Source: Blastocystis sp. Blastoise (lineage: Eukaryota; Protista; Bigyra: Opalinata). Taken from it: a DNA stretch of 64,000 nt. The stretch covers positions 1 to 64,000 of the forward strand of contig JBBPEB010000022.1 in assembly GCA_039096225.1 (NCBI GenBank). The letters are read 5' to 3'. The notes beneath the pieces were generated by a model. That model saw only the letters and a program-made list of their open reading frames with translations. It made no database searches and was not told the origin of the DNA. Made by a program: the position numbers and the translations under genes. This document shows, piece by piece, positions 1 through 46,966 of this stretch (positions are counted from its first letter, which is position 1; each line of letters begins with the position of its first letter).

Positions 1-619
1 ATGAGAATAGGCAAAAAAATTCCCATTGGTCAGTTTTTGGAAAAACCATTTGATTGGCTAATGTATACTATAGTTTGTCGCCGCAACTCCTCTAAACTTA
101 CGGGGAGTTAACTTTTGGCTGAAACACAGTTCAATACGATATAACGTGTAGTTGTGCACCGTATATTTGGTTAAGCGATATTATTAATAATTAAAAAGTT
201 ATTAATAAAAAAACAGAAAACATGATTTTTGAGTCGTTTTTGATTGGCTCTTTGGGATCATCCCGATAAAAATTGTTGACCAGACAATTGGAAAATAAAC
301 ATGGGGTAAACTTGATTTTTTCTCAATCCCACAATATACGTTATCCGTGTTTATTCTTTATATTTATCTACTTTTTAATACTTTTTCATATTGAACACGT
401 GAGGCCTTAACGGTCAAATTTAGATTCTTATTTTGACATGATATTCTGATTCAGGAGGTCGAAAAACCTAGGTGTACCAATTTTGAGCTCCTGAGGACGA
501 TTTTTGAGTGATCGATATTTTCTTTGATCTTCTTATAATCAACTAATATTGTAGTATTGTAATCAATAGGTCATCAAACTACTATATCTAAAACAAAGTC
601 TTAAAATAATGAGTTTTAG

Positions 620-1620
620 TGTCACAATTTTGAAAAGTGTGAATTAAGTGGTCTTAGAGTGAGAGATTCAATATAATGACTTTTATTTAGTAAACTAGAG
701 ATAATACTCTATTCTATGTTAAAAGGAAAGTCAAAATTATGAAGGTCAAAGTGTATGACCAAATGACAAAATGTGTCTTAAAAAGTAAAATGGTTTATAT
801 ATGTGTATAGAATCTTATATCAAGTCTATTCTATGAATAATAGCTTTAAATAAATAGTTTAAGGTTGTCAAATTTAAAAGAATGTGTAAAACATAGTCTT
901 AAACTGTGAATAAAAAATTTAGAGATATTAATTAGTATACAGCTGTAGTAGCTCTACAACATATCAAAAGTACAAAGAAAATAATTTTTAGAGAGTGGAT
1001 GTGTGAGGTGTTGTGACTATTATTTAAAATTTATTTTCACTTCAGTTTATATAAAATCGTGAATTTCGTGCATTGTAGAAAAATTGAGTCAAAATATCAA
1101 CTCTAAGGGTCTTAAATTTTGAAAAATGTAAAAATGAGTGACTTAGAGGACGAGATTCAAAATAAGAGCTTTTATTCATTAAACTAGAGTGTATGATCTA
1201 TATTATATTAAAAGAAGGGACGAAAATGTTTTGATCAAAGTGTATGAGCAAATGGTAAAGTGTCTTTAAAAGTGTTATGATGATGACAGTTGTGTATATA
1301 GGTTTAAATCAAGTCTACTCTTAAAATATTAGCTTTAAATAGCAAGTTAAAGGTTGTCTATTTGTCAAAATGTTTTAAAGACTGTCCTAAAATAAGAGAT
1401 TCAAGAAGTTGACTTTCATTTTATACATTATATGTCTATATAAACACTTTACTAAAAGAACTTTGGAAAATATTGTGGATGAGTGTTTTATCAAATGGTA
1501 AAGTTGTATCAAGAGTTGATTGTTTTCATTCCTTTTAGTATAAATCAATGTTTTGTGTCTACTCTTTAAAACTAACCATTTAACACTGAGTTTAAAGTTT
1601 TAAAGTCAACATGTGTGTTT
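620..1620. repeat. Degenerate ~245-bp tandem repeat array (A-B-A'-B' dimers) in the Helitron 5' subterminal region
   Basis: GAGATTCAA at 663, 1152, 1396; AAGTGTATGAsCAAATG at ~748 and ~1238; TCAAGTCTA, AGCTTTAAATA and AAGGTTGTC recur ~489 bp apart. Confidence 0.8.
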
Positions 1621-1921
1621 GGTTTGTTTACTTTTAATTATTAAAATTGAGTTTAAATCAATAAAACAAGTTTAACACATGTATTTTGATTGATATAATC
1701 AGTTTTAAGATGACTTGGCTGTTTAAGTATAAATGGATTTGTTCTCATTGTGACTGTTGTTGAGAAGAGTAAGTCTAAAAAAACTATAAAAAGTTAGATA
1801 TATATATATATAAGGTCAAAATTGAAAAGTATAAATTAAACTGGATTAAAATAAATTTAAAAAAGAGAATATATATATATAATAATATATAAATAAAATA
1901 TTTAAAAAAAGAAAAATAAGA

Positions 1922-1988
1922 CTTCATGTCAGGAATTGAACCTGAAAACAATCTATAATGATTGCTTCTCTCCTTCCAGAGCATAAAG
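1922..1988 (-). ncRNA. tRNA-like cloverleaf with B-box/T-loop (5'-type, copy A)
   Basis: Minus strand reads CTTTATG CTCT-GGAAGG-AGAG AAGCAATC-ATTATA-GATTGTTT(T) TCAGG-TTCAATT-CCTGA CATGAAG. Confidence 0.7.
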
Positions 1989-1989
1989 G

Positions 1990-2014
1990 GAGTTTAAAGA
2001 GTAATAATAATAAT

Positions 2015-2050
<36 letters not shown>

Positions 2051-2434
2051 GGAATGAAGGAAGTAGGAAGAATGTGGAAGTAGGAAGTAGGAAGAAAGAA
2101 GAAGGAAGGATGAAGGATGAAGGAAGAAGGAAGAAGTAGGAAGAAGGATGAAGGAAGAAGAAGGAAGAAGGAAGAAGTAGGATGAAGAAAGAAGGATGAG
2201 GAAGTAGGAAGAAGAAGGAAGAAGAAGGAAGAAGGAAGAATGACGGATGAGGAAGTAGGAAGTAGGAAGGAAGAATGAAGAATGAAGAATGAAGAATGAA
2301 GAATGAGGAAGAAGGTAGTAGGAAGGATAAGGAAGAAGTAAAATGAAGTAGAAAGAAGGAAGAAAGAAGAAAAAGGAACAAGAAGACTATTAAACCTATA
2401 TACAATAGAAAAAATATAAAAAGATAACATAAAA

Positions 2435-2465
<31 letters not shown>

Positions 2466-2669
2466 AATAAATAAATAAATATAATAAATATAATAAATAT
2501 AATAAATATAATAAATAAATAAAAAACATAAATAAATAAATAAATAAATAAATATAATAAATAAATAAATATAATAAATAAATAAATAAATATAATAAAT
2601 AAATATATATAAATATAATAAATATAATAAATAAATAAATAAATATAATAAATAAATAAATAAATATAA

Positions 2670-2700
<31 letters not shown>

Positions 2701-3180
2701 AAAACATAAATAATAAATAATAAAAATGAAAACAATAAATAAAATATAAATATATACCTAATAGAATAATCTGAAACCACAGACTAAGAAGAACGACATG
2801 AAAAAACGAAGACCACAACACATCAACAACATTTTCTTTCCTATAGAATAAAAATAATTAAAAACAATTTAATAGATGATATAAAAAGACAAAATAAATA
2901 ATATAGATAATAAAATTAAATAATAACAAAAAGTAATTAGTAAAAAATAAACAGATGTTAAGAAATAAATAATATATTTATATACCTGATAATAAGTAAC
3001 CCATTTCACACAACCAGGACCACTTTAAGAACCACTCACCACCACAACCAAGACAAATACAAGAGAATCCTATAAAAAAGTGTATTATTATAAATAAATA
3101 AATTAATATATACAAATAAATATAAAAATAATAACTAAATAACATCAAATTAATTAATAAAACATACCCAGACAATCAAT
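1990..3180 (-). other. Divergent spliced transcription unit, probably non-coding or degenerate: 84-nt exon 3069-2986, exon ~2840-2757, long CTT-rich last exon from ~2395
   Basis: TATAG|G acceptors and CAG|GTATA donors flank GC-richer islands conserved in all five copies; introns are TTTA-rich like host introns. Confidence 0.55.
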
Positions 3181-3216
3181 ACAAACAAATATTTAAAAAA
3201 TGTAAAAAACTATAGT

Positions 3217-3232
3217 TTTTGGGTACCCAAAA
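3217..3232. promoter_or_regulatory. Perfect 16-bp palindrome TTTTGGGTACCCAAAA in the putative bidirectional promoter
   Basis: Lies between the two divergent exon series; recurs at ~18311, ~28081, ~43119 and as a variant at ~36547. Confidence 0.5.
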
Positions 3233-3426
3233 TGTTTTTAATAAAAAATGTCCCTATTATCAGCTTAGCATAAGATAATAATAAAAATTCGAGGTTATTT
3301 ATGATTCCTATTAATTTTTAAATATGCATATTTTAAATATTGTCCCTATTTTACAAAAGTTCAAATATGAATATGTTTTTGTTTTCTACATAAAAATACT
3401 TATTTTATAATTAGTTATTAAATAAG

Positions 3427-6400
3427 ATGCCTAGAAAAGGCAGAATGTCATCAAGGCGGAGGTCCTTGAATCAAAAAAAATACGTTTCTCAAAGACGGTC
3501 CAGTATGTATTGTATTTATTTTTTTTTATTATTCATATATAGGTTCTTCTACTCAACAGGATGCAAGTATGGATGTCATTGATGGTGATGGTGCTTATCA
3601 ATATGGTCTTGAAGGTATATATTTATACATTTCTTTTTGTTTTATTATTTTATATTATCTTAGACTCTTCTCTGTCCTTGGTGTCCTTTACTGATGATGG
3701 TATAATGTTTTCAAGTGGTCTTGAAGGTATGTTGTCAATCATTTGTTTTTATTTTTATATTTTTATTTATCTATAGGTTCTTCTGTTGTTGTGGACTCTG
3801 TTGCTGGAGCTATTGATGATGATATACACTCCACTAATGGTCTTGAAGGTATGTTGTCAATCATTTATTTTATTTTTTTTTTTTATTTTTATTTATCTAT
3901 AGGTTCTTATACTCATGATGATGTTGTTGCTGATGCTACTGATGGTGATGCTAACTCTTCTCATGGTCTTCAAGGTATGTAATCATTTATTTATTTATTT
4001 ATTTTTAATTATTTCTTTTATTTCCTATTTATATGTTATTATAGGTTCTTCTGTTGCTATGAATGTTGGTGCTGATCTTAATCATAAAGAAGGTATATAT
4101 AATATATTTTCTTTTTCTTCTTTTTGATTTACTTTTATTTTATAAATATATATAGGTCCTTCTGTTCTGATAGTGTCTTCTGTTCATGGTACTGTATCTG
4201 ATGGTGATCATCCTTCTAATGCTAAAGGTATATAGATATATCATATATATATATTTTTTATTATTCTTTTAATTCTTTCTTATTTGTTTTTATATAGGTC
4301 CTTCAACTCAGTTAGTACATGGTCATTCTTCTATTCCTTCTTCAGAAGGTATATATATATATATATATATATATGTATCTATGTTTATTCTATTTTATGA
4401 TTCTATATAGGTGTGTCTTTTAATTTGGGATCGTGTGACTCTGTTGTTGGTCTTGATATAGTTACTACTAATATATATAAAGGTATATATATATATATAT
4501 AATATTATTTATTTATTTATACTTATACTATTGTATATATATATATAGGTGATGGTGTTAATAATTCTTCAGTCGTTGATGGTGTCAACAATTCTTCAAT
4601 TATTCAATGTATATTTATACTTATATTATATTCTATACTTATATAGGTTCAAATAAAGTTGTGGGTAAGTATTATTTATTATTTTAGTTTCTTTTTCTTT
4701 TGTTTTATTATTTTTTTTTCTTTCACAGATAATAGCTTTCTGTTGTCTGCTTTCTTTTTATTATCTATTTATATATTTATTTACTAAGCTTAGCTTTAGC
4801 TACTTAGTATTTAAATATTTAATAGAATCCTTTCTTTTTTCATTTTTGTTTTGTTATTTTTTTTTTTATTTTAATTTTACTTTAATCGTATCGATTAACG
4901 GGAAGGTGTCGGATATTAAGATAATTTTTGAATTACTTAATATTAAATAGTGTTGAGTATTTTAATATTTGTATTTAATTTAATTAATACAACTATTGAT
5001 TACCTATATGACTCATACTATTGCTGACTATTGTTCGCTTCTAACTCTATATAGTCTAACCGATGTAATACTATCAATGATGAGATATCTAAGTGTTAAG
5101 ATTCTTCACTTACTCACATTGTATATGATATTAACTGGTAGTTAGCTATATGTTTATAGAATGTTGTAACAAAGCACAATAGCTATAGATGTCCTCTATG
5201 AGGTTGAATCATATAGATTGTTTAATAAATTATACAATATTAATTACCTATACTTATTTAATATTAGTTTTCATTAATTATAATATTATCTTTCATTACA
5301 TTATAGTATTGAAGATAATTATTAATTAATAAAGTTTTTACTTTATATTATTTAATATATCATACTATATGTATGTATTATTATATTAATAAAGGTTATA
5401 TACTTTATATTAATAAATATATCATAGTATATCTATGTATTATTATATTAATAAAGGTTATATACTTTATATTAATAAATATATCATAGTATATCTATGT
5501 ATTATTATATTAATAAATGTTATACTTTATATTAATTAATATATCATAGTATATTCTATGTATTATTATATTAATAAAGGTTATATACTTTATATTAATA
5601 TATATAATATCATACTATACTTATGTATTATATTATATTAATAAAGGTTATACTTTATATTAATAAATATATCATAGTATATCTATGTATTATATTATAT
5701 TAATAAGAGTTATATACTTTATATTAATAAATATATCATACTATATCTATGACTTATATTATATTAATAAAGGTTATACTTTATATTAATTAATATATCA
5801 TACTATACTTATGTATCATATTATATTGATGAAGGTTATACTTTATATTAATTAATATATCATACTATACTTATGTATGTATTATTATATTAATAAATGT
5901 TATACTTTATATTAATATATATATTATCATACTATATCTATGTATTATATTATATTAATAAAGGTTATACTTTATATTAATTAATAAATACTTCAACAAC
6001 TATAACAATGAAAGTTAATTTATATACTACACAACTAAACTTTATTCTAAACTTAAACATAATATATTTAATATCTAATAATTAATATATATAGGTTCCA
6101 ATAAGGATAAAATAAATAATAATGATTTATCTAAATCATTTGGTTTTAACTCAAAACCTTTAGCTTTGTTTTCGACTTTTAATTTTCAAAATAATATTCC
6201 TTTACAAAACATTCAAAACAATAATTCAAATAACAATATTGATATTGATATCGATAATCGTTATTCACAAATAAATAATAATAATTCTATATTAAATAAT
6301 GGTTCAAACCTATTCAATCAAATGAATCCAGTTAATCAATCAATTAATAACATATCTATTGTTCAAAGTCAAATTAATAATAATAATCAATCTATTCCTA

Positions 6401-9400
6401 TATCAACTACTATTATACAACCTACAGAAAAAAATACTTCTGTTTCTAATAATAATAATGATTCTATTAATACTTCTTCACACTCTTTACCTGTTGTTAC
6501 TACTATTCCAACTGATGTAAATATATCTAACAATAATAATTCTACAATCATTAATGATAATACAAATAATTCAAGAAATAACACTAATACTAATAATAAT
6601 GAAACAATAATACATAGAAATAATAGATCTATTAATTCCATTATGAATAGTTATTTAACTATTCCTGATTTAAGTCCTATTCTTCCTCCTTTAAGTATTC
6701 TAACAAATATTCCTCATATTAATTTAAATAATGATAATGAATCAGAAATTATAACAACAATACCTAATAGTAGTAGTAGTAGTAGTTCAAGTGATAGTAG
6801 TAGTAGTAGTAGTAGTAGTTTTTCTGATAATGATTCTGATTCTGATTATATTGATCCTTTTCCTAATATTAATAGTAATACTCAAAATAATGACGAAATA
6901 CCAGTTGTAAGAACTATTAGAAGACCTATAACAGATAATAGTATGTTTTTTATTATTTAAATATATTTATTTAATACTTTTTTATAGTTGAAGAAGATAT
7001 AATTATTCATCCTATTATTAATAGAGGAAGAAGAAGAGCTTTAGATATTTGTATGCTATTTATTTTTTATAATTCTTTATGAATAATTAAATAACAAATT
7101 ATTTTTATAGATAATCAACAAAGATTATTATATCCTGGATTACATAATTGTATTGCTTCTATTCAAAGAAGTATTTATATATATTTAATATTTATTTTAT
7201 ATTATTTTATATAGATTCTCATGGTGATTTCGTATTAAATGAAGCATTGAATACTTATAAAGCTAATTATTTAGGTGATTTTAATGTTCATTGTGAATAT
7301 TGTCATGCTAAACATTTTGAATTAGAGAAAGGAATGAATGATAAGTTTTATACTTGCTGTGGTAGTGGTAAAGTAGTTCTTCCTGAGCTTCCTGATCTTC
7401 CTAATACTATTCGTTCTTTATTACAAAGAGATAATCCAGATTCAAGAGAATTTATTAATAATATTATTCGATATAATAATTCTGTTGCTTTAGCTTCTTT
7501 AGCTGGAAATAATACTTCTGATGATGATTTAAGAAATTCTTCTGGACCTTTACTATTTAAATGTGGAGGTAATATATATCATACTTTTAAGAGTGCTTTA
7601 GATTTTGATGTGAATGATCCTACAAGACATCCTGTATTCAATCAATATTATATGATAGATGGAGATGAAGCTACTCATATGAGAAGTATGAATCGATATT
7701 TTTGTGATTTAAAACCAAATATTTTAGAGATATTAGATAGTACAATAAGAGAATATCATCCATTAGCTCAAATATATAATTCACTTCGAGAAAGAGTAGA
7801 TGAAGTATTAGAAGAGAATAGTCAAATGAATAGAAATAATATTAATTTATTAATAGAGTTTAAGAAACAAAGAAGAGAAGTACCTGATATAAGAAGATAT
7901 AATACTCCTCAAGTAGATGAAGTAGCAGTAATATATCAATATAGAGAAGGAGGAGTAATGCCAGAAAGAAGTTATTGTTGTTTTCCTAGAAGTGGTATGG
8001 AAATAGTAGCTACTAATAGTAATAATGAACAGAATCGTTATACTTCAGGTCAATATATAGTAATGAAGAATACTAATTCTTATATAGATTGTATGGTTTA
8101 TCCAGTTATGTTTCCAACTGGAAGACAAGGTTGGTATCCAGATTTATTATCATTGAATCGTTCTAATCAAATTACTATTACTATGTTAGAATATTATAAT
8201 TATATGCTTCAAATGAAAGATCCACCTTATGATAATTATTTATTAAAATATAAGAAATTAACTTTACAATATATTACTGATAATTATATTCGAGTAGAAC
8301 AAAATAGAATTAATTATATACGAAATAATCAAAATAAGTTAAGAGCTTCAACTTATCAGAATATAAATAATATGTTAGAAGAGAGAGGAGATCAAATAAA
8401 TGAGAATGATAGAAATATAGATAGAATAGGTAAAGCTATTATATTACCTTCTTCTTTTGTTGGTAGTCCAAGAAATTTGCAACAGAAATATATGGATGCT
8501 ATGAGTGTAGTTCGAGAATATGGTAAACCTGATTTATTTATAACATTTACTTGCAATCCAGATTGGTTAGAAATAAAGAATAATATTCCAGAAGGTTATA
8601 CTGTTAATGAATTTCCAGATTTAGTTTCAAGAGTGTTTCATTTAAAGTTGAAACAATTACTTTCTGATATAAAGGATAAGAATATATTTGGTACTGTAGA
8701 AGCTTTATTATATTCAGTGGAATTCCAAAAGAGAGGTTTACCACATTCTCATATATTAATTATTTTAGATACGAATTCTAAATATAGAACAGAAGATGAA
8801 GTAGATAGTATAATAAGTGCAGAGATTCCTGATAAAGAATCAACTCCTCTTCTTTATGAATTAGTTAAGAAACATATGATTCATGGTCCATGTGGTCCTG
8901 ATTATGATACGAATTGTGTTTGTATTGATAGATCAACAGGTAAATGTAGTAAGAGATTTCCAAAAGAATATATAGAGCAAACTAATTGTCATTTAAATTC
9001 TTATCCTTTATATCAAAGAAGAAATATTCCTGATAGAACTATTACTCTTATTCGTAGTCATAATACTTATACTATTGATAATCGTTGGGTAGTTCCTTAT
9101 AATCCTTATTTATTATTGAAATATCAAGCTCATATTAATGTAGAAGTCTGTTGTAATATTCAAAGTACAAAATATATATATAAGTATGCATTAAAAGGAA
9201 ATGATTCTGTGATAGCTCAATTAAGAAGAGTGAATGATAATGGAATAGTAGATGAAACTCAAGCTTATTTAGATTGTCGATATGTTTCTCCTCCTGAAGC
9301 TTCTTATCGTTTGAATTGTTTTGAAATTACTTATAATTCTGTTTCTATTAATAGATTACCTATTCATTTACCTGATGATCCATATATATTATTTCGAGAA

Positions 9401-11827
9401 GGACATGAAGTAGAAGCATTAAGGAATAGTTTAGAGAAAGGTACTAAATTAACAAAATACTTTGATTTAGAGAAAGAAGTTCAGAATCAAAGAAAGATAT
9501 ATACTTATTATTATATAGAGAAGAAGCATGGTATTCGTAATATGAATAATGTAGAAGAAGAAAGAGAATTGATTCAAGTTCGTTTAGAAGAGATAAATAG
9601 AATAAATAGTTATGAAGTAGATGATGATAATATATCCGAAGAATTATTGAAAATATTAGATGAGAAATATCCTATTTATGCTTATCATGAAATACCAAAA
9701 TATTATGTATGGAAATCGAATACAAATACTTGGAATAGACGTCAGAGAGATATAAAAGCTTTAGGAAGAATGTATTATGTGAATCCAAAAGATAAGGAAC
9801 GATATGCTTTGAGATTATTATTATTGAATACGAAAGGAGCTGATAGCTTTGATTCTTTGAAGATAGTAAAAGGATTGAATAGTAATGAACCTTATAGAAC
9901 CTTTAGTGAAGCAGCTATAGCAAGAGGATTATTGAATAATGAGAGAGAAGTATTTGATTCATTTTCAGAAGCTATTGTTTTTGCTACTCCATGTCAATTG
10001 AGACAATTATTTATTACTTATATTTCAGAATCATTATTAACAAATGTGAAAGAGTTTTGGATTCGATTTAAATCATTTCTTAGTGAGGATTATAAACATT
10101 CAATGCATAATAATGAAATAGATTATATAAATACTCCTTTAGCTCAAGATTTAGATTCATCAAGTGTTATAGAAGATGATACTAATAGTGTTCTTCAAGA
10201 TTATGAAATACGTACTTTACAAGATATAAAAGAGATGATGATAAGTATAGGAGTGAATTATAATGATTTAGGATTACCTCAAGTAGAAGAACAACATCAT
10301 TATAATGATTATAATTATAATCCTACATTAGAATTACAAGAAGCTAATAGAGTAATAGAATTATTAAATGAAGAACAAAGAAATGCATTTGATAGAGTAA
10401 TTCATTCAATAGAAAGTAGTAGAATAGAAGATAAGTTATGTTTCTTTATAGATGGTCCAGGTGGAAGTGGAAAGACTTTCTTATATAATAGTTTATTAAG
10501 TTATTTACGTGGACATAATAAGAATGTATTACCTGTAGCTTCAACAGGAATTGCTTCTACTTTATTACCAGGTGGTAGAACAGCTCATAAACAATTTGGT
10601 ATTCCTTTGAATGTTGATCCTGATTCTACTTCAAATATAGATTTAGCTAGAGATAGAAGAAAAGTAGAAGAAATAAGAATAGCTGATTTAATAATATGGG
10701 ATGAAGCTCCTATGATGAAAGGTGATTGTTTTATGGTAGTACATAGATTATTATGTGATATAATGAATACAGAATTAGATATTCCTTTTGGTGGTAAAAC
10801 AGTAGTATTAGGAGGAGATTTCAGACAATGTTTACCAGTTATAAGAAAAGGAACTCAAGCTCAGATTGTTAGTTCTTCTATAAAGTTTTGTTCCTTATGG
10901 AATTCTATCAAAAATAATGTCATTCATTTATCAAGAAATATGAGAGCTTTAGAAGGAGCAGATGATTTTAGACAATGGTTATTACAAGTAGGAGATGGTG
11001 TTCTTTCTAATAATTATACTATTAGTCATCATTTAGATATAGATTATATTCCTATTCCTCCTCAATGTATTGTGAATGATGATTTATGTGTTACTGTATT
11101 TGGACATCGAATCAATACTTCTCTTGATTCTGATATCAAACGATTAGCTTCTTCTGTTATATTAGCTTCTACTAATGATTGTGTTGGTACTTTAAATGAT
11201 TTCATTGTTGATAATCTTCTTTCTGGAACTACTACTCCTTATATCTCTTCTGATTCTATTCTTGATTCTGAAACAGATGATCCAGAATCAAATTATCCTA
11301 TCGAGTTTATCAATTCTCAAACACCTTCTGGAATGCCTCCTCATATATTAAATTTAAAAATAGGTTGTATCATTATGCTTTTAAGAAATCTTAATCCTTC
11401 TAAAGGATTATGTAATGGTACTAGACTTATAGTAACTCGATTAGGATCAAATAATATTACTGCTACTATTTTAAATCCTCCTCCTTCTCTTACTATTGAT
11501 GAACAAACTGTTATTATTCCAAGAATCATCTGTAATTCAAATCCTGAAGATCTTCCTATTATTATATCCAGAAGACAATTTCCTATTCGTTTAGCCTTTG
11601 CCATGACTATCAACAAATCTCAAGGACAAACATTTGAAAGAGTTGGTGTTTACTTAGATCGTCCTGTCTTCTCTCATGGTCAACTCTATGTTGCTTTCAG
11701 TCGTGCTCGATCTTTCAACGCTCTTTTTATTAAGGTAGTTGATAGTGTCTCTCAAGGTAAGATGATTAGTAGTAGTAATGAAATATTTACTAAGAACGTG
11801 GTCTTCAGGTCTACTCTAAATAATTAA
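3427..11827 (+). CDS. Helitron RepHel (HUH Rep + PIF1 helicase); predicted 15 exons, 2,085 aa
   Basis: Exons 3427-3502, 3543-3614, 3664-3726, 3777-3848, 3903-3974, 4045-4092, 4156-4227, 4298-4348, 4411-4482, 4549-4608, 4647-4664, 6095-6940, 6988-7050, 7111-7170, 7215-11827 join into one open frame. Motifs: CEYC..CC Zn-knuckle-like, PDLFITFTCNP, VEFQKRGLPHSH, YIYKY, GPGGSGKT, IWDEAPM, GDFRQCLP, FAMTINKSQGQT, HGQLYVAFSR. The last exon is certain; the upstream joining is inferred. Confidence 0.9.
5320..5985. repeat. ~60-bp AT-rich minisatellite (~11 units) in RepHel intron 11
   Basis: Unit TATTATATTAATAAAGGTTATA(TA)CTTTATATTAATAAATATATCATASTATATCTATG repeated in tandem. Confidence 0.9.
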
Positions 11828-12016
11828 ATGCTTTATTTTTTCTTTTTTCTTCTTTTGTTATATTTGTTTGTTTTTGTTTTATGTTTGTTAATTATTTTTT
11901 CTTTTTAATCTATTACTTCTTCACTTTTTATTTGTTTTTTAAATGTTTATAATAAACAAGGTTGTTTTGTTCAATAAAGTTAAAGAAATAATTTTAAAAC
12001 CCAACTGCACAACGCA

Positions 12017-12063
12017 GCCGCGGCGCGTCGCCGTTAGGCGGTGCGCCAGCGGCGTTACCCTAG
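12017..12063 (+). terminator. Helitron 3' terminal hairpin + CTAG (rolling-circle termination signal)
   Basis: GCCGC GGCGCGTCGCC-GTTA-GGCGGTGCGCC A GCGGC GTTACCCTAG. Confidence 0.9.
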
Positions 12064-18891: not shown

Positions 18892-18934
<43 letters not shown>

Positions 18935-19611: not shown

Positions 19612-19668
<57 letters not shown>

Positions 19669-27476: not shown

Positions 27477-27515
<39 letters not shown>

Positions 27516-34917: not shown

Positions 34918-34948
<31 letters not shown>

Positions 34949-35093
34949 CAAAGTATTATATTAAATAAGTAAATATAGATTAGCTAAAGCTAAACAAAGT
35001 AAATAAATAGATATATAAAGAAAGAAAATATAAATAAAAAATAATAAGCAAAAGAAAAAGAAAATTAAAAAAATAAAAACATTCTAAGTATAC

Positions 35094-36352
35094 CCATCAT
35101 ATTAGAAAAGCCTAAAAAATAAAAGACATATATATATATATATATATAAGAGATATAATAATAAATATATGATATATATATATACCTTTAAGTATTAGAG
35201 ACCTATCCACACTATCACCTATATAGATAAAGATATATATATAAAAGATACATTATAATAAATATATGTAATATATATATATACCTTTAGATATATTTCT
35301 ATTTATAAGAATAAACATTATCATCATGATGATAGTATTCCAAATTAGATGGTACACCTATATATAATAAATGATTGAGATAATAATAATAATATACATG
35401 AATAAACAATAAATATATATATATATATACCTTCTAAAGAAGGAACAGAAGAATAACCATGATATCATAACTGAGTTGAACAACCTATATATGAACAAAT
35501 TAGTATTAATAAAATAAAAAGAAATTAAAAAATAAAGAAATATGAATATACCTGTATCATTACCTATAATAGAAGACTCGATCAGAATAGAAGGACCTAT
35601 ATATAAATAATAAATAAAAATAAACTAAATTAAATTTAAAAAATAGACATACCTTAATTATTAACACCTTCAGCAACCACACACACAACAATAAAAGAAC
35701 CTATAAAGAAACAGTAATAGACAAATAATAAATAAAAAAATAATAATAATAAATGAATGACAATATATATATATACCTTTAATACCATAGGAACAGTCTA
35801 CCTGATCACCAACAACATCAGCAGCAGTATTGAAAACATCAGAAGAACCTAAATATATATAAAAGTAAAAAAGAAAAATAAATGAATGACAACATACCTT
35901 CAACACTACACAGATATCTTCATCTACACCACTGTTTACATGCACAACAACTGAAGAACCTATATATACAAAGAAATAACAAAAGAAAAATATAATAAAA
36001 TAAATGATTGGCAACATACCTTCAATACCATAAGAGGAACCTATATCTACGTAAACAGAACCATTAGCATCATTTAAAGCAACAGAAGAACCTATAAATA
36101 AAGAAAAATTAAAGAAATAAAAACAAATCATTGACAACATACCTTCACAGTTAGCATAACAGGCAACACCACAGCCTCCGTATGATACAAATAACATAGA
36201 AGAACCTTTAAGACCATCAGAGCAAGTAATACCAAGACCAAGAACATACACAACTGGATCCTATTGAGTAGAAGAACCTGAAAGTTTTTGAGAAATGTAT
36301 ATTTTTCCATCTACACACTTCGATCTTGACAGCATCATGCCTTCTGAGGCAT
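35094..36352 (-). pseudogene. Micro-exon array (copy D); introns 1 and 2 precisely absent
   Basis: Exon-exon fusions at 36278/36277 and 36206/36205; intron 3 (36142-36092) retained. Confidence 0.8.
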
Positions 36353-37882
36353 CTTAGATAATATTTTAATTATAAAAAATAAGTGTTTTCTCTTAATATA
36401 AAAATTGTGTTTATATTTCTACTTTTAAAGAAAAGGGTCTTTTATAAAAATATGCTTCTTAAAATCTAATAGAAATCAAAAATACCCTTGAGTTTTCATT
36501 GATTTATTTACAAAAGTAATAATTGGGTCATTTTCTATTAAAAACATTTATGGTACCCAAAAAACATAGTTTTTTACATTTTTTAAATATTTGATTATAT
36601 TATTTGATTCTGTATATTTTATTTATTTATTTGATATTGTTTTATATTGCATTATATCTATCTATCTATATAGTTATTTATTTATTCAAAATAATACACT
36701 TTTTTATAGGATTCTCTTGTATTTGTCTTGGTTGTTGTAGTAAAGAGTTCTTGAAGTGGTCACGGCTATGTGAATTGGATTACTTTGTGTCAGGTATATA
36801 ATATATATTTATTTTTATAGTATTTGTTTTTTAATTCTCTCATTACTTTGTTTTATTTTATATTTTTGTTATCTATATTATTTATTTTGTCTTTTTATAT
36901 CATTTATTAAATAGTTTTTAATTATTTTTATTCTATAGGAAAGAAAATGTTGTTGATGTGTTGTCGTCTTCGTTTTTTCATGTCATTCTTCTTTAGTCTG
37001 TGGTTTCAGATTAATCTATTAGGTATATATTTATATTTTATTTATTATTTTCATTTTTATTATTTATTATTTATGTTTTTTATTTATTTATTTATGTTTT
37101 TTATTTATTTATTTATTATATTTATTTATTTATTTATTATATTTATTTATTATATTTATTATATTTATTTATTATATTTATTTATTTATTATATTTATTT
37201 ATTTATTTATTTATTATATTTATTTATTTATTATTTATTTATTATTTATTTATTTTTATATGTTTTCTATTATATATAGGTTTTATAGTCTTCTTGTTCT
37301 TTTTTCTTCTTTCTTCCTTCTTTCTTCTTCATTTTACTTCTTCCTTCTTCCTTATCCTTCCTACTTCTTTCTTCCTTCTTTCTTCCTTCTTTCTTCTTCC
37401 GTCTTTCTTATCCTTCCTACTTCTTTCTTCCTTCCTTCCTCATCCGTCATTCTTCCTTCCTTATTCTTCCTTCTTCCTCATCCTACTTACTTCTTCCTTC
37501 TTTCTCATCCTTCTTTCTCATCCTTCTTCCGTCTTCCTTATTCTTCCTACTTCCTTCTTCCTCATCTGGCATTCTTCCTACTTCTTCCTACTTCTTCCTA
37601 CTTCTTCCTGCTTCATCATTCATCATTTCCTTCTTCCTGCTTCCTTCTTTCTTCTTTCCCATCCTTGATTCTTCCTTCTTCCTTCTTCCTCATCCTTCAT
37701 CCTTGTTTTTTCCTTCTTCTTCCTCATTCTTCCTTCTTCCTCATCATTCCTACTTTTACATCCTTCCTCATTCTTCCTTCTTCCTCATCCTTCCTCATCC
37801 TTCCTACTTCATTCTTCCTCATTCTTCATTCTTTCTTCTTTCTTCCTACTTCCTACTTCTTTCTTCCTACTTCCTTCATTCC

Positions 37883-37923
<41 letters not shown>

Positions 37924-37948
37924 ATTATTATTATTATTTATAAACTCC

Positions 37949-38015
37949 CTTTATGCTCTAGAAGGAGAGAAGCAATCATTATAGATTGTTTTCAGGTTCA
38001 ATTCCTGACATGAAG
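37949..38015 (+). ncRNA. tRNA-like cloverleaf (5'-type, copy D)
   Basis: CTTTATG...TCAGGTTCAATTCCTGA CATGAAG. Confidence 0.7.
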
Positions 38016-41000
38016 TGTTATTTTTCTCCTGTTTTTTAATATTTTTTTTTACATATTATTATTATATATATATATTCTCTTTTTTAAATTCATTTTAATC
38101 CATTTTACTTTATACTTTTCAATTTTGACATTGCATACATATATCTAACTTTTTATAGTTTTTTTTAGACTTCCTCTTCTCAACAACAGTCAGAATGAGA
38201 ACAAAATCCATTTTAACTCGAGCAACTAAGTCATCTCAAAACTGTTTGAATCAATCAATATAGACGTGTATGTCATAATTTATCATTTTAAACTGATTTT
38301 CAACTCTCAAAAGTAAACAAACCAAACACACATGTTGACTTTTAAACGTTAAACTCAGTATTAAAAGGTTATTTTTATAGAGTAGACATAAAACATTGAT
38401 TTAAACAAAAATGAATGGAAACAATCAACTCTTGATACAACTTTGCCATTTGACAAAACACTCATCCACAATATTTTCCAAAGTTCTTTTAGTAAAGTGT
38501 TTATATATACATGTTATGTATAAAATGAAAGTCAACTTCTTGAATCTCTTTGTTTAAGACACGCTTTAAAACATTTTGACAAATTGACAACCTTTAACTG
38601 GTTATTTAAAGTTGATATTTTAAGAGTAAACTTGATTTAGACCCTTAAACACAACTGGCATCACCATAACACTTTTAAAGACACTTTACCATTTGGTCAT
38701 ACACTTTGATCAAAACATTTTCGTCCCTTCTTTTAATATAATATAGATCATACACTCTAGTTTAATGAATAAACACTCAAATATTGAATCTCGTCCTCTA
38801 AGTTACTCATTTTTACATTTTTTTAAATTAAGACCCTTAGAGTTGATTTTTTGACTCAATTTTTCTACAGTGCACGAAATTCACGATTTTGCTCAAACTG
38901 AAGTAAAAATAAATTTTAAATAATAGTCACAACCCTTCACACATCCACTCTCTAAAAATTATTTTCTTTGTACTTTTGATATGTTGTAGAGCTACTACAG
39001 CTGTACACTAATTAATATCTCTAAATTTTTTATTCATAGTTTAAGACTATGTTTTACACATTCTTTTGAATTTGACAACCTTAAACTATTTATTTAAAGC
39101 TCTTATTCATAGAATTGACTTGACTTAACATTTGAAACACATATAGACACCCTTTTACTTTTTAAGACACATTTTGTCATTTGGTGATACACTTTGACCA
39201 TCATAATTTTGACTTTCCTTTTAACATAGTATAGAGTATTATCTCTAGTTTACTAAACAAAAGTCATTATATTGAATCTTATCCTCTAAGACCACTTAAT
39301 TCACATTTTTCAGAATTGTGACACTCAAACTCATTATTTTAAGACTCTGTTTTAACTATAGTAGTTTGAGGACCTATTGATTACAATACTGTAATATTAG
39401 TCGATTATAAGAAGATCAAAGAAAATATCGATCACTCAAAAATCGTCCTCAGGAGCTCAAAATTGGTACACCTAGGTTTTTTGACCTCCTGAATCAGAAT
39501 ATGATGTCAAATTAAGAATCTAAATTTGACCGTTAAGGCCTCACGTGTTCAATATGAAAAAGTATTAAAAAATAGATAAATATAAAGAATAAACACGGAT
39601 AACGTATATTGTGGGATTGAGAAAAAATCAAGTTTACCCCATGTTTATTTTCCAATTGTCTGGTCAACAATTTTTATCGGGACGATCCCAAAGAGCCAAT
39701 CAAAAACGACTCAAAAATCATGTTTTCTGTTCTTTTATTAATAACTTTTTAATTATAAACAATATCGCTTAACCAAATATATGGTGCACAACTACATGTT
39801 ATATCCTATTGAACTGTGTTTCAACCAAAAGTTAACTCCCCGTAAGTTTAGAGGAGTTGTGGGTACAAACTATAGTATACCTTAACCAATCAAATGCATT
39901 TTCCAAAAACTGACCAATGGGAATTTTTTTGCCTATTCTCATATATATAGTAATGATATGAGAATAGGCAAAAAAATTCCCATTGGTCAGTTTTTGGAGA
40001 ATGCATTTGATTGGCTACTATATACTATAGTTTGTCGCCGCAACTCCTCTAAACTTACGGGAAGTTAACTTTTGGTTGAAACACAGTTCAATAGGATATA
40101 ACGTGTAGTTGTGCACCGTATATTTGGTTAAGCGATATTATTTATAATTAAAAAGATATTAATAAAAGAACAGAAAACATGATTTTTGAGTCGTTTTTGA
40201 TTGGCTCTTTGGGGTGACCCCGATAAAAATTGTTGACCAGACAATTGGAAAATAAACATGGGGTAAACTTGATTTTTTCTCAATCCCACAATATACGTTA
40301 TCCGTGTTTATTCTTTATATTTATCTATTTTTTAATACTTTTTCATATTGAACACGTGAGGCCTTAACGGTCAAATTTAGATTGTCAATTTGACATCATA
40401 TTCTGATTCAGGAGGTCAGAAAACCTAGGTGTAGCGATTTTGAGCTCCTGAAGACGATTTTTGAGTGATCGATATTTTCTTCGATCTTCTTATAATGGAC
40501 TAATATTACAGCATTGTAATCAATAGGTCATCAAACTACTATAGTTAAAACAGAGTCTTAAAATAATGAGTTTAAGTATGACAATTTTGAAAAATGTGAA
40601 TTAAGTGGTCTTAGAGGACAAGATTCAATACAATGACTTTTATTTAGTAAACTTGAGATATTACTCTATTCTATGTTAAAAGGAGAGTCAAAATTATGAA
40701 GATCAAAGTGTATGACCAAATGACAAAATGTGTCTTAAATAGTAAAAGGGTTTCTATATGTGTTTAGAATCATGTATTAAGTATATTCTATGAATAAGAG
40801 CTTTAAATAAATAGTTTAAGGTTGTCAAATTCAAAAGAATGTATAAAACATAGTCTTAAACTATGAATAAAAAATTTAGAGATATTAATTAGTGTACAGC
40901 TGTAGTAGCTCTACAACATATCAAAAGTACAAAGAAAATAATTTTTAGAGAGTGGATGTGTGAAGGGTTGTGACTATTATTTAAAATTTATTTTTACTTC

Positions 41001-41879
41001 AGTTTGAGCAAAATCGTGAATTTCGTGCACTGTAGAAAAATTAACTTCAAAAATCAACTCTAAGGGTCTTAATTTTCAAAGATGTAAAAATGAGTGACTT
41101 AGAGGACGAGATTCAAAATTCCGCCTCACTTTCATATAACTAGACCACACAGTCTATATTATGTCAAAAGAAGGGACAAAAATATTTTGATCAAAGTGTA
41201 TGACCAAATGGTAAAGTGTCTTTAAAAGTGTTATGGTGATGACAGTTGTGTTTACATGTCTGAATCAAGTCTATTCTTTAAATATTAGCTTTAAATTGCA
41301 AGTTAAAGGTTGTCAATTTGTCAAACTGTTTTAAAGACTATCTTAAACAAAGAGATTCAAGAAGTTGACTTTCATTTTATACATAATATGTCTATATAAA
41401 CACTTTACTAAAAGAACTTTGGAAAATATTGTGGATGAGTGTTTTGTCAAATGGTAAAGTTGTATCAAGAGTGAATTGTTTCCATTCCTTTTTGTTTAAA
41501 TCAATGTTTTATGTCCACTCTATAAAAACTATCTTTTAATACTGAGTTTAACGTTTTAAAGTCAACATGTGTGTTTGGTTTGCTTACTTTTGAGAGTTGA
41601 AAATCAGTTTAAATTGATAAATTATGTCATAGACGTCTATATTAATTGATTCAAGCAGTTTTGAGATGACTTAGTTGTTTGAGTTAAAATGGATTTGTTC
41701 TCATTGTGACTGTTGTTGAGAAGAGGAAGTCTAAAAAAACTATAAACAGTTAGATATATGTATATAATGTCAAAATTTAAAAGGTATAATCTAAAAGAGA
41801 TAAAAATAAGTTTAAAAAAAGAGAAAATATATATATATATATAATATGTAAAAAATATTAAAGAAAAAGAAAAATAAGA

Positions 41880-41946
41880 CTTCATGTCAGGAATTGAACC
41901 TGAAAACAATCTATAATGATTGTTTCTCTCCTTCTGGAGCATAAAG
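41880..41946 (-). ncRNA. tRNA-like cloverleaf (5'-type, copy E)
   Basis: Same fold as 1922-1988. Confidence 0.7.
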
Positions 41947-42490
41947 GGAGTTTATAAATAATAATAATAATCAAATATATATATTTATATATATATAATA
42001 AGAAGGAAATGAAGTGGAAGGATGAGGAAGAAGGAAGTAGGAAGGATTAGGAAGAAGAAGTAAGAATAAGGAAGGATGAGGAAGAAGGATGAGAAAGAAG
42101 GAAGTAAGAAGAAGTAAGAATAAGGAAGGATGAGGAAGAAGGAAGAATCCAGAATGAAGAAGAAGTAAGTAAGAAGAATCAAAGATGAGGAAGAAGGAAG
42201 AAGGAAGTAGGAAGTAGGAAGCATGAATGAAGAATGAAATAGGAAGAAGGAAGCATGAATGGAGAAGGAAATAGGAAGAAGGAAGAAGGAATGAAGAAGG
42301 AAATAGGAAGAAGGAAGAAGGAAGAAGAAGGAAGGAAGAAGAAGTAAGTAGGAAAGATGAGGAAGAAGGAAGAAGTAAGAAGGAAGAAGAACGAAGATAG
42401 AAAGAAGAAAAAAAAACTAAGAAGAATATTAAACCTATATACAATAAATAAACATAATAAATAAATAAATAAATAAATAAATAATAAACA

Positions 42491-42540
<50 letters not shown>

Positions 42541-43328
42541 TAAATAAATAAACATATAAAAAAAATGAATAAATAAATAATAAATAAATAAATAAATAAT
42601 AAAAAAAAAGTAAACAATAAATAATAAAAATAATAAATAAAATATAAATATATACCTTTAAAATAACCTTGAACGACAGATTAAAGAAGGAAAATATTTA
42701 GCAACGAAGACCACAACACATCCATTAAAGTTTCTTTCCTATAGAATAAAAATTATTAATAATATATAGAATAAATTATATGTAAAGACTAAATAAATAA
42801 TATTGATAATAAAAATAATAAATAATAAAAACGAATTAACAAAAAGAAAAACAGATCTTAAGAAATAAATAATATATTTATATACCTGATCATAAATAAA
42901 CCATTTTACACAGCCAAGACCACTTCAAGAACACTTCAACACCACAACCAAGGAAAATACAAAAGAATCCTATAGAAAAGTGTATTATTTTAAATAAATA
43001 AATATATACATACAAATATATATAAAAATAATAACTAAACAATATCAAATAAATAAATAAAACATACTCAGTCAATCAATATAATTAAATATTTAAAAAA
43101 AGAGTAAAGAACTATGTTTTTTGGGTACCCAAAATGATTTTAAATAAGAATGACCCAATTATTACTTTAGTAACAAAATCAATAAAAAATTAAGGTTTTT
43201 TTTTATTTCTATTATGTTTAAAGAAGCATATTTTGAAAATAGACCCTATTATATTTATTAATACAAATGAAATAGGATTCTTAAATACATATTCAAATAC
43301 TTAATTGTATATTATATTATTAAATAAG

Positions 43329-44464
43329 ATGTCTGAAAACAACAAAATGTCATCCAGGAGGAGGCCTGGAAATAAAAAATAATTTATATTTCAAAGAAAA
43401 TCAGGTTCTTCTACTCAATAAAATCCAGTTGTGTATGCTCTTGGTCTTGGTGGTACTTGCTATGATGGTCTTTAAGGTTCTTCTATGCTATTTGAATTAT
43501 GCAGTGGTGGTGGTGTTGCCTGTTATGCTAACTGTGAAGGTTCTTCTGTTATTGTAAGTGATTCCAATAGTGATATCGGTGTTGATGTAGGTTCTTCTTG
43601 CTTTATAGATGGTATGTTACCAATCATTTATTTTTTTTTTATATTTTATTATTATTTTTTTATTATTTCTATATATATATAGGTTCTTCAGTTGTTGTAC
43701 ATGTTAACAGTGATGTTGATAATAGATGTCTGTGTGGTGTTGAAGGTATGTTGTCATTCATTTATTTCTTTTTTTACTTTTATATATATAGATTTGTTTT
43801 ATTGATGTAAATGTTGCTATGGATGTTGTTGGTGATCAGGTAGACTGCTCATATGATATTAAAGGTATATATATATTGTCATTCATTTATTATTATTTTT
43901 TTTTTATTTATTATTTGTCTATTACTGTTTCTTTATAGGTTATTCTACTGTTGTGGTTGTAGTTGCTGAACGTATTAATGATGAAGGTATGTCTACTTTT
44001 TAAATTTAATTTAGTTTATTATTATTTTTATCTTATATAGGTCGTTCTTTTCTTATGGAGTCTTGGATTAATAGTAATAATGATACAGGTATATTCTTAT
44101 TTCTTCCTTTCTTTTTTTTTTGATTTATTAATTATCTTTTCATTATATATAGGTTCTTCAAGTCAGTTAAGATATCATGGTGATTCCTCTGTTCCTTCTT
44201 TAGAAGGTATATATATATATTTATTGTTTATATATATTTTATCATTTATTATATTATATATAGGTGTCTTTTCTAATAGGGGATCTTATCACCCTAATGT
44301 TAGCTTTCATTTTAATAATAAAAATGTATCTAAAGGTATATATATATATATATAACAAATATTTATAATATTTCTTTTAATATATATATGTTAGATATAT
44401 TTATTATACTATCTCTTATTATATATATATATCTTTTATTTATATAGGTTCTCTTAGTTTTATT
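43329..44464 (+). pseudogene. Micro-exon array (copy E); introns 1-3 precisely absent
   Basis: Fusions at 43404/43405, 43476/43477, 43539/43540 relative to copy C. Confidence 0.85.
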
Positions 44465-45954
44465 GTTATGTTTAGATTTTTTTTTTTTTAGTTCTTTTTC
44501 TTTTTCTTTTGTTTATTATTATTATTATTTTTCACATTTAATAGCTTTCTATTATCTGCTTTCTTTATATTATTTATTTATTTATGCTGTTGTTATCGTT
44601 TTAGCTATTCTATATTTAAATGTTTTCTTTTGCTATTTTTGTTTTGTTCTTTTTTTTTTTTTTTATTTAAATTGTGTCGACTATTAAGATAATTCTTGAA
44701 ATACTTAGTATGTTAAATAGTGTCAAGTTTTTAAATATTTGAATTAAATTTTAAAACATTTATTGTCACTTTTAACACTGTATAGTATTACTGATTTAAA
44801 ACTGTCAATAATTGAGATATTTAAGTTTTGAGTTTCTCTGTTTACTAGCATTTATATTTACATAATTTTGTGAACGTATTAACTCATAAAAGTAACTTTA
44901 AGGTTGTAAAATAAAAAATATTATCTTAAAATAGGAGATTCGAAATTCTAATAGAAGTTTAATATATAATAAGCTAAATTCTACAACATATTAAAAAATA
45001 AGAGAATTTCATTTTTGAAAAGTGAATTAACAATGTGTTTGAGTTGTCTAGAAATTTTAAAGAGTTAGTATATTCTTTTAAAATTGTGTTTTCATTAGAC
45101 TATGAAAATTTTGACTTTTAAAAACAAGTTTAAAGGGATTAATATTTTTAAATGTAGAAATGAATTATCCAAAGGATGAGATTCAATATAAAATATTTTA
45201 TTTATCAAACTATGAATTATATTCTAAATTATATCAAAAGAAAGGACAAAAATACACTTGACAAAGTGTATGACCAAATGTAAAATGTTTATAAAGAGTG
45301 TCAAAATGGTGACTCTTATGTTGATAGAGTTATGATGAGTATAGTGTTATAATATTAGCTTTTAAAATTAATTATAAGTGTGTCAACCTTTCAAAATGTG
45401 TTAAAAATGATCTTGAAGTCAGAGATTCAAGACATTAAACTTGAATTAATAAATAAAATAATGAGATCTATACTATGTGGAAGTTATGTCTAAAACTATT
45501 TTGATACACTTGATATCGAAATGGTAAAGTCTCTCTAAAAGTAATATTGTTGACACTTTTGTGTTTAGAAATGCTATTTAGATTGAATTTATTAATATTA
45601 ATTCAAAAACTTTGTGTTTAAGTCGTTAAAGTCAAAATGAATGTTGACTTTGTTGTGTTAGATTTGTTTTATTTTTATGAAATGATTAAAATAAGTTTAT
45701 GCTATTTTATTATAATCTATTTAAAATGATTTTACAACATAAAAATATTTTTCAATACTTAACATTATGACCCATTTCTAAATTTATTACCTTTAGAAAC
45801 TCCATAATAATTAAAACAGTAATTTAACTATTTATAAATACAAAATATATTTTTAAAATAATAAATAACAAATATAATGATTCAAAAAGGATTTCTTATT
45901 TTCTTCAAGTATTGTTTTTAGTTTTTCAGATACTATTCAAATAATCTATTTAGT

Positions 45955-46022
45955 TCTTATATCAGGAATTGAACCTGATTACAATCAATAAATGATTGCT
46001 ACTCTCCATATAGAGTATAAGA
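45955..46022 (-). ncRNA. tRNA-like cloverleaf (3'-type, copy E)
   Basis: Same sequence as 31061-31128. Confidence 0.7.
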
Positions 46023-46966
46023 AGTGTTATTAAAATAATATATATAATATATAATATATAATATATAATAAGTAACATATTATAGATAATATTTAATAAA
46101 TAATATATATTATATAATATATAATATATAATATATAATAGATAAAAAGGAAAGAAAGTAAATAAAAACCAAACAGTTATTATTCATTGCAGCCGCGGTC
46201 CGGTGCCGTTAGGCCCCGGACCTGCGGCGTGACCCTAGTATATTAATATAAGCTTAGTCAATAACAAAATAATAAACAAAACAAGATTTTTTTTCTCAGT
46301 CATTTTTTTGGAAAAACCGGGTTTTTTCCAAAAAACCGGGTTTTCCCCATGAGTGTAAAATAACATTGATATAGTCATCATCTTTGTCATAAAACCCATT
46401 ACAATTGTTTTGAGCTACCCACGACACATAATCAGTAACATAATTGGACGGAACTCGTATAAAAGATGCTTTCGTTAAAGGGTTTATTACTCTGGTGTCT
46501 TTTGATCGTTTATAAAAGGTTTATTGACTAAATAAAACGTTCTGACAGTAATCATATTGTGAATCTGTTTGATAAACTTATTAAAATTCATACTTTGAAC
46601 TCTGTCAACTATTGCATTATAAATCTCGTCATAAGACTCCATAACACTCGTCAACAACGTCAAATATAGAATAATTAATATAAACAAAGAATTGTGTATT
46701 TTTTTCCCCTTAATTATTTTCTCTATAATTTACAACAATAAAAACACTGCCATTTTGTCAAGTTTATCGCGGTAATAATAGTACTCAAAAATAGACTGTC
46801 CTGAGTCAAGTTTTACAATTTAGAGCGTCCTGAGTCAATTATCTCTTCTGTTCTTACATATTCCCATGAATATGGCAAATTGTAGTAATTCCTTCTTTTA
46901 TTCTAATTGAAGAACTACAACTCGTAGCTAGTATATTTTGTGTTAGTTTTAAGAGTTTTGTGAGGA

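Follow-up and report, generated by a model that had tools for sequence, protein, structure and literature searches.

Helitrons are regarded as pure DNA elements, with non-autonomous relatives for which the two ends suffice; among the latter, Helitrons/Helentrons of the DINE-1 type are rolling-circle elements with internal tandem repeats. For the transposase genes of CACTA elements, intron loss mediated by reverse transcriptase (RT) has been proposed, operating via complementary DNA (cDNA) made by the RTs of retroelements and homologous recombination (Buchmann et al. 2014, PMC4158355). Here we describe a Helitron family in the tortoise-gut Blastocystis sp. 'Blastoise' (33-Mb assembly, about 22% GC), five copies of which lie in the first 64 kb of contig JBBPEB010000022.1, i.e. 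contig 11 (this whole stretch, positions 1 to 64,000, is referred to as the window). The genome paper on the tortoise isolate, which reports a GC content of 21–23% and longer introns, nowhere mentions Helitrons (PMC12129017).

The non-autonomous lineages of this family keep signals of an RNA type, i.e. a tRNA mimic as well as the splice sites of a dead open reading frame (ORF) and of an antisense unit, and from several copies introns have been removed precisely at their splice borders. The explanation that we favour, with somewhat better than even confidence in it as a whole, combines divergent RNA units, an antisense RNA that ends in a cloverleaf and a return of cDNA into element DNA. The 5' half of the element would consist of two divergent RNA polymerase II (Pol II) units, starting from a spacer of about 260 nucleotides (nt) with a 16-nt palindrome that would act as a divergent promoter. 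Of these, the sense unit would correspond to the micro-exon leader of RepHel and the antisense one to a four-exon, CU-rich non-coding RNA of unconstrained sequence that may run into a tRNA-derived, non-decoding cloverleaf. By cutting at this cloverleaf, the host RNase P and RNase Z could set the 3' end of the RNA and stop antisense transcription before the 5' repeats, and a second cloverleaf in the non-autonomous copies may act in the same way on antisense transcripts reading into the element. Lineages that transpose would retain these RNA signals even without an ORF. Finally, spliced or partly spliced sense transcripts may now and then be reverse-transcribed by retroelement RTs of the genome, and recombination of this cDNA with element copies would erase introns exactly, in most cases close to where the transcript begins.

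The Helitron family and its common module

Self-comparison of the window reveals five related elements, i.e. one autonomous Helitron of 12.1 kb (copy A) and four non-autonomous copies of 6.3–6.6 kb (B–E).

1-12063, forward strand: copy A, autonomous Helitron with RepHel domains; 3' hairpin and CCCTAG, followed by T, at 12063
12014-12063, forward strand: 3' terminal hairpin of A
14963-21547, reverse strand: copy B, non-autonomous, full set of array introns
24851-31344, forward strand: copy C, non-autonomous, full set of array introns
31295-31344: 3' hairpin variant of B–E, as present in C
33390-39956, reverse strand: copy D, non-autonomous, nested in the leader of E, without introns 1-2
33377-33389 plus 39957-46238, forward strand: copy E, split by D, without introns 1-3

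By every defining test, this family is a Helitron family. All copies begin with TCATTACT... and end with ...CCCTAG next to a GC-rich hairpin, and the canonical TC...CTAG ends, the 3' hairpin and insertion between A and T are common to A–E. The ORF at 7148-11827 of A matches Helitron_like_N/Rep (PF14214, 2e-56) and a PIF1-type helicase (PF05970, 2e-64). That the elements enter between A and T and duplicate no target site can be seen in two places: the repeat hosting C is uninterrupted in a paralogue, with C sitting between its A and T, which confirms the ends of C, and excision of D in silico restores the leader of E exactly, D having inserted after nt 13. The host repeat itself (22237-24850 plus 31345-32968) is AT-rich and without ORFs, and is contiguous at 92–94% identity on contig 31 (L024). 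A leader that starts with TCATTACTATATATAT and continues with GAGAATAGGC is common to all five copies, and the 3' end of B–E consists of a single GC-rich hairpin, then GTGACCCTAG, with T as the flanking base. The contig begins 16 nt into the leader of A, these first 16 nt lying beyond the contig start, and the insertion point of B is behind nt 11 of a leader remnant (14952-14962). Together with the position of D in the leader of E, this suggests repeated insertion of the family into its own TATATA-rich leader or, alternatively, a preference for AT-rich targets.

The family is young and recently active, judged from a 1.26-kb part of RepHel in which at least eight genomic copies show 100% identity and from many copies that are 99–100% identical genome-wide. 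Compared with C, the 3' region of the non-autonomous copies falls into subfamilies that are about 100% (C/E), 89% (B), 82% (a third group) and 79% (D) identical.

The order of parts in A–E is leader, conserved unique stretch, about four diverged 245-bp repeats, antisense cloverleaf, (AT)n run, polypurine tract, AAAT-repeat tract, two short GC-richer blocks, palindrome-bearing spacer and micro-exon array. The last 1.1 kb of B–E hold a second copy (74–81% identical) of the repeat block, the cloverleaf and the TA-rich run, which A is without.

573-1614, forward strand: diverged tandem repeats of about 245 bp (about four units) of A, with self-matches at offsets 244, 490 and 735 and 61–70% identity
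3217-3232, no strand assigned: 16-nt perfect palindrome of A centred on GGGTACCC, in the best-kept part of the 260-nt spacer between the units
18311-18326 (B), 28081-28096 (C) and 43119-43134 (E): palindrome in other copies
36547-36562: palindrome position in D, degenerate

An earlier note on this DNA, made from the sequence alone, had described a module order common to the five copies and repeats of about 245 bp. Both descriptions stand, with the modules located in A–E in that order and blocks homologous to the repeats of A present in B–E. Its claim that the palindrome is kept holds for A, B, C and E; D and its subfamily carry TGGTACCC in place of GGGTACCC. The note had also let A reach near 14950, which has to be corrected: A ends at 12063, with the hairpin and with the same end as five other genomic copies.

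Cloverleaves and splice sites

Nine cloverleaves are present in the window, one upstream in each of A–E and a second one in each of B–E, the latter located about 220 nt from the 3' end and with (TA)-rich repeats ahead of it on the antisense strand.

1922-1988, reverse strand: upstream cloverleaf of A (fold z -3.2)
19514-19580, forward strand: upstream cloverleaf of B
26837-26903, reverse strand: upstream cloverleaf of C
37949-38016, forward strand: upstream cloverleaf of D
41879-41946, reverse strand: upstream cloverleaf of E
15193-15261, forward strand: downstream cloverleaf of B
31060-31128, reverse strand: downstream cloverleaf of C (27.9 bits with the Rfam tRNA model)
33559-33627, forward strand: downstream cloverleaf of D
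45954-46022, reverse strand: downstream cloverleaf of E

Across these nine copies, 97.6% of the stem cells are paired, compared with 41–49% when the partners are slid, and five pairs have changed on both sides, i.e. in a compensated manner. In the stretches of the genome that were examined, there are 58 model matches, and after leaving out six weak ones on the sense strand, the 52 strong antisense instances comprise 12 variants with 11 G.U or U.G pairs versus 2 C.A. With our own covariance model the antisense strand scores 79–96 bits (with one divergent outlier at 54) and the sense strand just 23–24 bits, and the fold is therefore selected on the antisense strand; at least 150 matches in the genome reach 79 bits or more. 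The antisense strand is not the strand that Helitrons are known to move. Moreover, in four non-autonomous subfamilies the 100-nt window that holds the cloverleaf is 5% variable, compared with 16–32% in the neighbouring windows. Taken together, these substitution patterns place the cloverleaf stems under an RNA-fold constraint on the antisense strand.

With regard to its origin, the cloverleaf has a canonical T arm with a GGTTCAATTCC B-box, which is invariant in 11 of the 12 variants, the most divergent variant having an altered loop. The canonical tRNA architecture (linkers 8-9 and 26, a 5-bp anticodon stem and a 7-nt loop) is not found; rather, the consensus supported by covariation is linker-less, with an 8-bp anticodon stem and a loop of 6–7 nt (6 nt in the upstream set). 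When ARAGORN was run on the window, it called neither set of cloverleaves and only a tRNA-Leu at 49297-49380. The earlier note had spoken of a tRNA-like fold, and the Rfam tRNA model (RF00005) bears this out in part: the downstream copy is tRNA-like with 27.9 bits, yet stays below the cut-off of 29, and the upstream copy gives no match. The Rfam model reads the downstream cloverleaf as a near-canonical tRNA with a 7-nt loop and the middle triplet UUA (which would pair with UAA); it is the linker-less fold, not this one, that is backed by family-wide covariation. In sequence and predicted fold, the cloverleaf is tRNA-derived, but not a tRNA, and the modelled structure and covariation of its acceptor and T arms would suit processing by RNase P and RNase Z.

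As an alternative to a Pol II 3'-end signal, the cloverleaf could be an RNA polymerase III unit of its own or a B-box site bound by TFIIIC, i.e. either the gene of a small tRNA-like RNA or a barrier in the chromatin around the transcribed part. The nearly invariant B-box, a run of 5–7 T within about 5 nt after the upstream cloverleaves, the bracketing of the module by two cloverleaves in B–E, the closeness of the downstream one to the Rfam cut-off and its lack of an upstream unit inside the element would all suit such a function. There is, however, no good A box, the T run is missing from the downstream copies, and the stem covariation indicates selection for an RNA fold and not for a DNA motif alone. 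In addition, the cloverleaf follows the CU-rich exon immediately in each of the five window copies, which are those in which this placement was checked (a larger set of 25 copies covered splice sites and palindrome only). On balance, we regard this alternative as rather doubtful.

The antisense unit that would end in the upstream cloverleaf was delimited in A by splice-site alignment and is a prediction.

2000-3168, reverse strand: predicted antisense spliced unit of A
3168: end of putative exon a1
3167-3070: putative first intron
3069-2986: putative exon a2
2985-2841: putative second intron
2840-2758: putative exon a3
2757-2396: putative third intron
2395 to about 2000: putative exon a4, followed by (AU)n and the cloverleaf

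The three candidate introns have the borders G/GTAT...TATAG/G that are usual for this genome; the third one holds ATTT repeats, and the last exon, of about 400 nt, is CU-rich. All antisense GT and AG dinucleotides are kept in the 25 copies, with the last exon bases before two donors varying. Among representatives of the subfamilies, 0/10 splice-dinucleotide positions are variable versus 82/217 in the intron interior and 58/165 in the exons (Fisher p 0.015 and 0.03, respectively), and the exons are no better conserved than the introns. As the exons vary like introns while the splice sites are fixed, it seems to be splicing that is kept here, not a coding sequence. Long antisense ORFs are uninformative in this respect, because polypyrimidine and ATTT repeats cannot hold stop codons.

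On the sense strand, the corresponding structure is the N-terminal leader of the RepHel gene.

3427-4664, forward strand: sense micro-exon array of A, N-terminal leader of RepHel (11 exons of 18–76 nt, introns of 38–70 nt, all phase 1)
4665-11827, forward strand: rest of the RepHel gene of A (1430-nt intron, exon from 6095, small introns, main ORF)

The exons of A are 76, 72, 63, 72, 72, 48, 72, 51, 72, 60 and 18 nt long and give an open frame when joined. This frame resumes at 6095 after the 1430-nt intron, which carries 62-bp tandem repeats; two small introns follow near 6940-6986 and 7173-7213, and the main ORF runs to 11827. This exon model was set by hand and checked against the annotated 2079-amino-acid protein P0001, whose N-terminus is exactly as predicted by the 11 exons. 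The underlying annotation pipeline drew on both RNA-seq junctions and ab initio models (PMC12129017). The RepHel protein of the window has a 100% identical counterpart at NCBI, assigned to Blastocystis sp. 'Blastoise'. Between the autonomous copies A and C14, the coding arm differs strongly. A second Helitron family (P0013) was considered as the source of the arrays in B–E and rejected, since its N-terminal arm has no similarity to them.

B–E are without RepHel, and in-frame stops in exons 1 and 2 are common to all non-autonomous subfamilies, so that the array of these copies cannot be coding from its ATG. In a comparison of B, C, D and copy L034, just 1/34 GT/AG positions is variable, versus 62/386 positions in the intron interior (p 0.04) and 139/516 in the exon interior (p 0.0008); for the extended splice-site positions the variability is 4–6%, as compared with 16% and 27% for the interiors of introns and exons, respectively. 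That exons are more variable than introns, even in copies with a dead ORF, would fit exon sequence that is richer in GC and decays neutrally in an AT-rich genome.

What the earlier note had said about the non-autonomous copies, i.e. that they lost RepHel, gained stops and still kept splice sites and cloverleaf pairing, is in agreement with all of these data. It had also proposed to measure constraint on stems and splice sites against neutral positions: the cloverleaf turns out to be a local minimum of variability, and splice sites vary far less than their surroundings in both units (3% of the sense and 0% of the antisense dinucleotide positions, versus 16–41% around them). Constraint of this kind on the retained module makes sense only for RNA signals.

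Exact intron losses in the sense array

D is without introns 1-2 (junctions 36278/36277 and 36206/36205) and E without introns 1-3 (43404/43405, 43476/43477 and 43539/43540), and all these junctions are exactly those of the predicted spliced product of intron-bearing relatives, just as the earlier note had claimed intron-less junctions for two copies. Among 25 non-autonomous copies read as sequence, intron 1 alone is lost in two, introns 1-2 in D, introns 1-3 in E and one other, and introns 1-5 in three, while introns 6-12 are lost in 0/25, i.e. losses are found only in introns 1-5 of about 12. Match tables obtained with naturally intron-less queries add copies without intron 1 only, 2 only, 5 only, 1+2+5 and 1+3+5. 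A strict 5' nesting of losses, as suggested by the first 25 copies, was rejected on account of these patterns. Without exception, for all five introns and in all copies examined, every lost intron was removed exactly at the splice junctions.

Between E and C, the 2.7 kb that extend from exon 1 to the 3' end are 99.2% identical, the three intron removals are the only large indels, and the intron configuration of E occurs in no other copy of the assembly. Likewise, copy L033 is about 100% identical to L034 over about 1.5 kb except for the missing intron 1. E is also a mosaic, whose first 3.4 kb resemble the 82% subfamily and which becomes C-like from inside exon 1 onward, next to the intron-less stretch; copy L027 is a patchwork of subfamilies as well. 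Such structures suggest that recombination or template switching among copies is frequent. We estimate that there have been at least ten independent losses across introns 1-5.

Several features of this record are consistent with an RNA-mediated route. The genome contains at least 20 intact RT ORFs (21 RVT_1 matches, most of them in ORFs of more than 1000 amino acids). Adjacent introns were lost together, as expected for RT-mediated loss, in E (1-3), D (1-2) and three further copies (1-5); single and non-adjacent losses occur too. Classical RT-mediated intron loss is biased to the 3' end of a gene. Here, by contrast, the losses lie in introns 1-5 of about 12, and this 5' concentration would fit templates that were short, prematurely ended or partly spliced transcripts.

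Alternatively, the intron-less junctions could be deletions at the DNA level between AGGT repeats, arising without RNA by slippage or microhomology end joining, perhaps with the help of the single-stranded Helitron intermediate. AGGT is found at both borders of all array introns, losses decrease with intron length (the shortest, of about 40 nt, is lost most often, those of 50–54 nt come next and the one of 76 nt is rarely lost), and single-intron and non-nested losses do occur. Such a process should, however, also have affected introns 7 and 9, which are about 60 nt long with the same microhomology and are lost in 0/25 copies. Nor would it explain why exact intron removals outnumber all other deletions of at least 30 nt in the array, where, in very AT-rich DNA, hundreds of other 4-nt repeat pairs exist at similar spacing, or how E, at a divergence of just 0.8% from C, came to lack three introns in a row. 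For these three reasons, we favour the RNA route over microhomology; judged from the sequences, an RNA-mediated loss is quite probable and the purely DNA-based one unlikely.

Apart from these subjects, the window contains a perfect (AAATAG)38 microsatellite (32293-32519, with 100% matches) and, past the Helitron cluster, a host region in which the tRNA-Leu(UAA) at 49297-49380 is genuine and minus-strand ORFs are located within 53028-58155, one of them with a CAF1A dimerisation domain.

Weighing the explanation and comparison with known systems

A number of observations weigh against the overall explanation of divergent RNA units, a cloverleaf-ended antisense RNA and cDNA return. Losses are not strictly nested: introns 1, 3 and 5 are missing from one copy, and in others intron 2 or intron 5 alone is missing. 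AGGT flanks every array intron, such that microhomology deletion would give the same junctions, and the intron lost most often is the shortest. Since copies are mosaics, DNA gene conversion can spread one loss among different backgrounds, which makes the count of independent events uncertain. On the antisense strand, no unit of the element itself lies upstream of the downstream cloverleaves, no triple-helix element of the MALAT1 type turned up, with no search having been aimed at one, and why a non-autonomous element should need splicing has no explanation. The earlier note's idea that the module works as RNA or as a cis-signal and that RNA information re-enters DNA consequently fares unevenly: RNA-type constraint and exact losses speak in its favour, while the AGGT flanks leave the route of loss ambiguous.

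A far-reaching version of this explanation would be that propagation of the family depends on its RNA layer, i.e. that mobility, or escape from silencing, requires an antisense RNA ended by a tRNA mimic together with a spliced sense RNA, acting in cis or in trans, with spliced RNA being repeatedly copied back in a 5'-anchored gradient. We put this forward tentatively and hold it to be possible, with the greater weight on the other side. If true, the family would provide a natural setting in which a rolling-circle DNA transposon is edited from RNA templates.

It is improbable that the retained features are cis-acting signals in DNA, or in single-stranded DNA, for transposition (e.g. loading of RepHel or priming of the second strand) rather than RNA signals. 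Part of the element does look like this. The first 1.9 kb of B–E are 92–93% identical to A, compared with 73–82% further in, and the best-kept part, with 2–9% variability, is the unique stretch between leader and repeats at element positions 201-600 (e.g. 25050-25450 of the window); both are probably part of a cis region for transposition. In the 3' hairpin, A and B–E share the outer stem, the loop and the CCCTAG end, whereas the inner stem differs by paired changes, which, as read from these sequences, are covariation in a DNA signal. This hints that one RepHel may read the shape of the hairpin over its sequence, or that B–E use another partner. Yet, G.U pairs of the antisense cloverleaf are C.A mismatches on the sense strand, the one that Helitrons are known to move, the constraint on GT and AG has no obvious reading at the DNA level, and the exon model equals the annotated gene. 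Least probable of all is an absence of selection, with young copies homogenised by gene conversion in which splice sites and stems have not yet decayed: many copies are indeed 99–100% identical and mosaic, but the tests are relative ones within the same alignments (splice sites being 3–6% variable versus 16–27% for adjacent sites), stems change by compensated pairs, and the cloverleaf window stands out as the local minimum of variability.

Should transcripts confirm the proposed RNA units, the use of the tRNA-processing machinery to form the ends of long non-coding RNAs would reach beyond vertebrates to a stramenopile transposon, selection on a transposon would be seen to act on splicing itself, and the individual copies would form a dated record of intron loss that allows cDNA and microhomology models to be separated.

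In the literature searched, no Helitron is described as having a tRNA-like element, a spliced unit on the antisense strand or copies that lack introns. This agrees with the earlier note, which knew of no described Helitron with such a combination, although a flow from RNA to DNA into a DNA transposon does have a precedent in the CACTA elements (PMC4158355). With canonical Helitrons the family shares the RepHel domains, the 5'-TC and CTAG-3' ends, the GC-rich 3' hairpin, insertion between A and T, and non-autonomous relatives that share its ends. It differs from them in that the non-autonomous copies also share a 4.6-kb module (with the antisense tRNA-like element, the antisense intron-bearing unit, the palindrome and the ORF-dead leader) and that the hairpin stems of A and B–E are different. 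Internal tandem repeats are a likeness to DINE-1-type elements, with the repeats here being about 245 bp long, diverged, subterminal and paired with a cloverleaf.

The cloverleaf, in turn, shares with genuine tRNA genes (RF00005) a 7-bp acceptor stem, a canonical T arm and loop and a D-arm-like hairpin, and is set apart from them by a score below the cut-off, the missing ARAGORN call, the lack of linkers, the 8-bp anticodon stem and the 6-nt loop of the upstream set. A parallel of a different kind is offered by mascRNA and menRNA of vertebrate MALAT1 and NEAT1, which likewise are non-decoding cloverleaves ending a long non-coding unit (a predicted one in our case), with the acceptor and T arms kept and the anticodon arm altered. 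There is no sequence relation to these, the cloverleaf described here is transposon-borne and stramenopile, and it has a second copy without an upstream unit; by analogy of position and fold, it may thus be said to resemble the mascRNA class, not to belong to it. The CACTA transposase genes, finally, provide a parallel for exact intron loss from a gene carried by a DNA transposon (PMC4158355). In the Blastocystis family, however, the losses are found among near-identical copies in one genome, in non-coding copies too and in a rolling-circle element, and they are located near the 5' end of the unit and not the 3' end.

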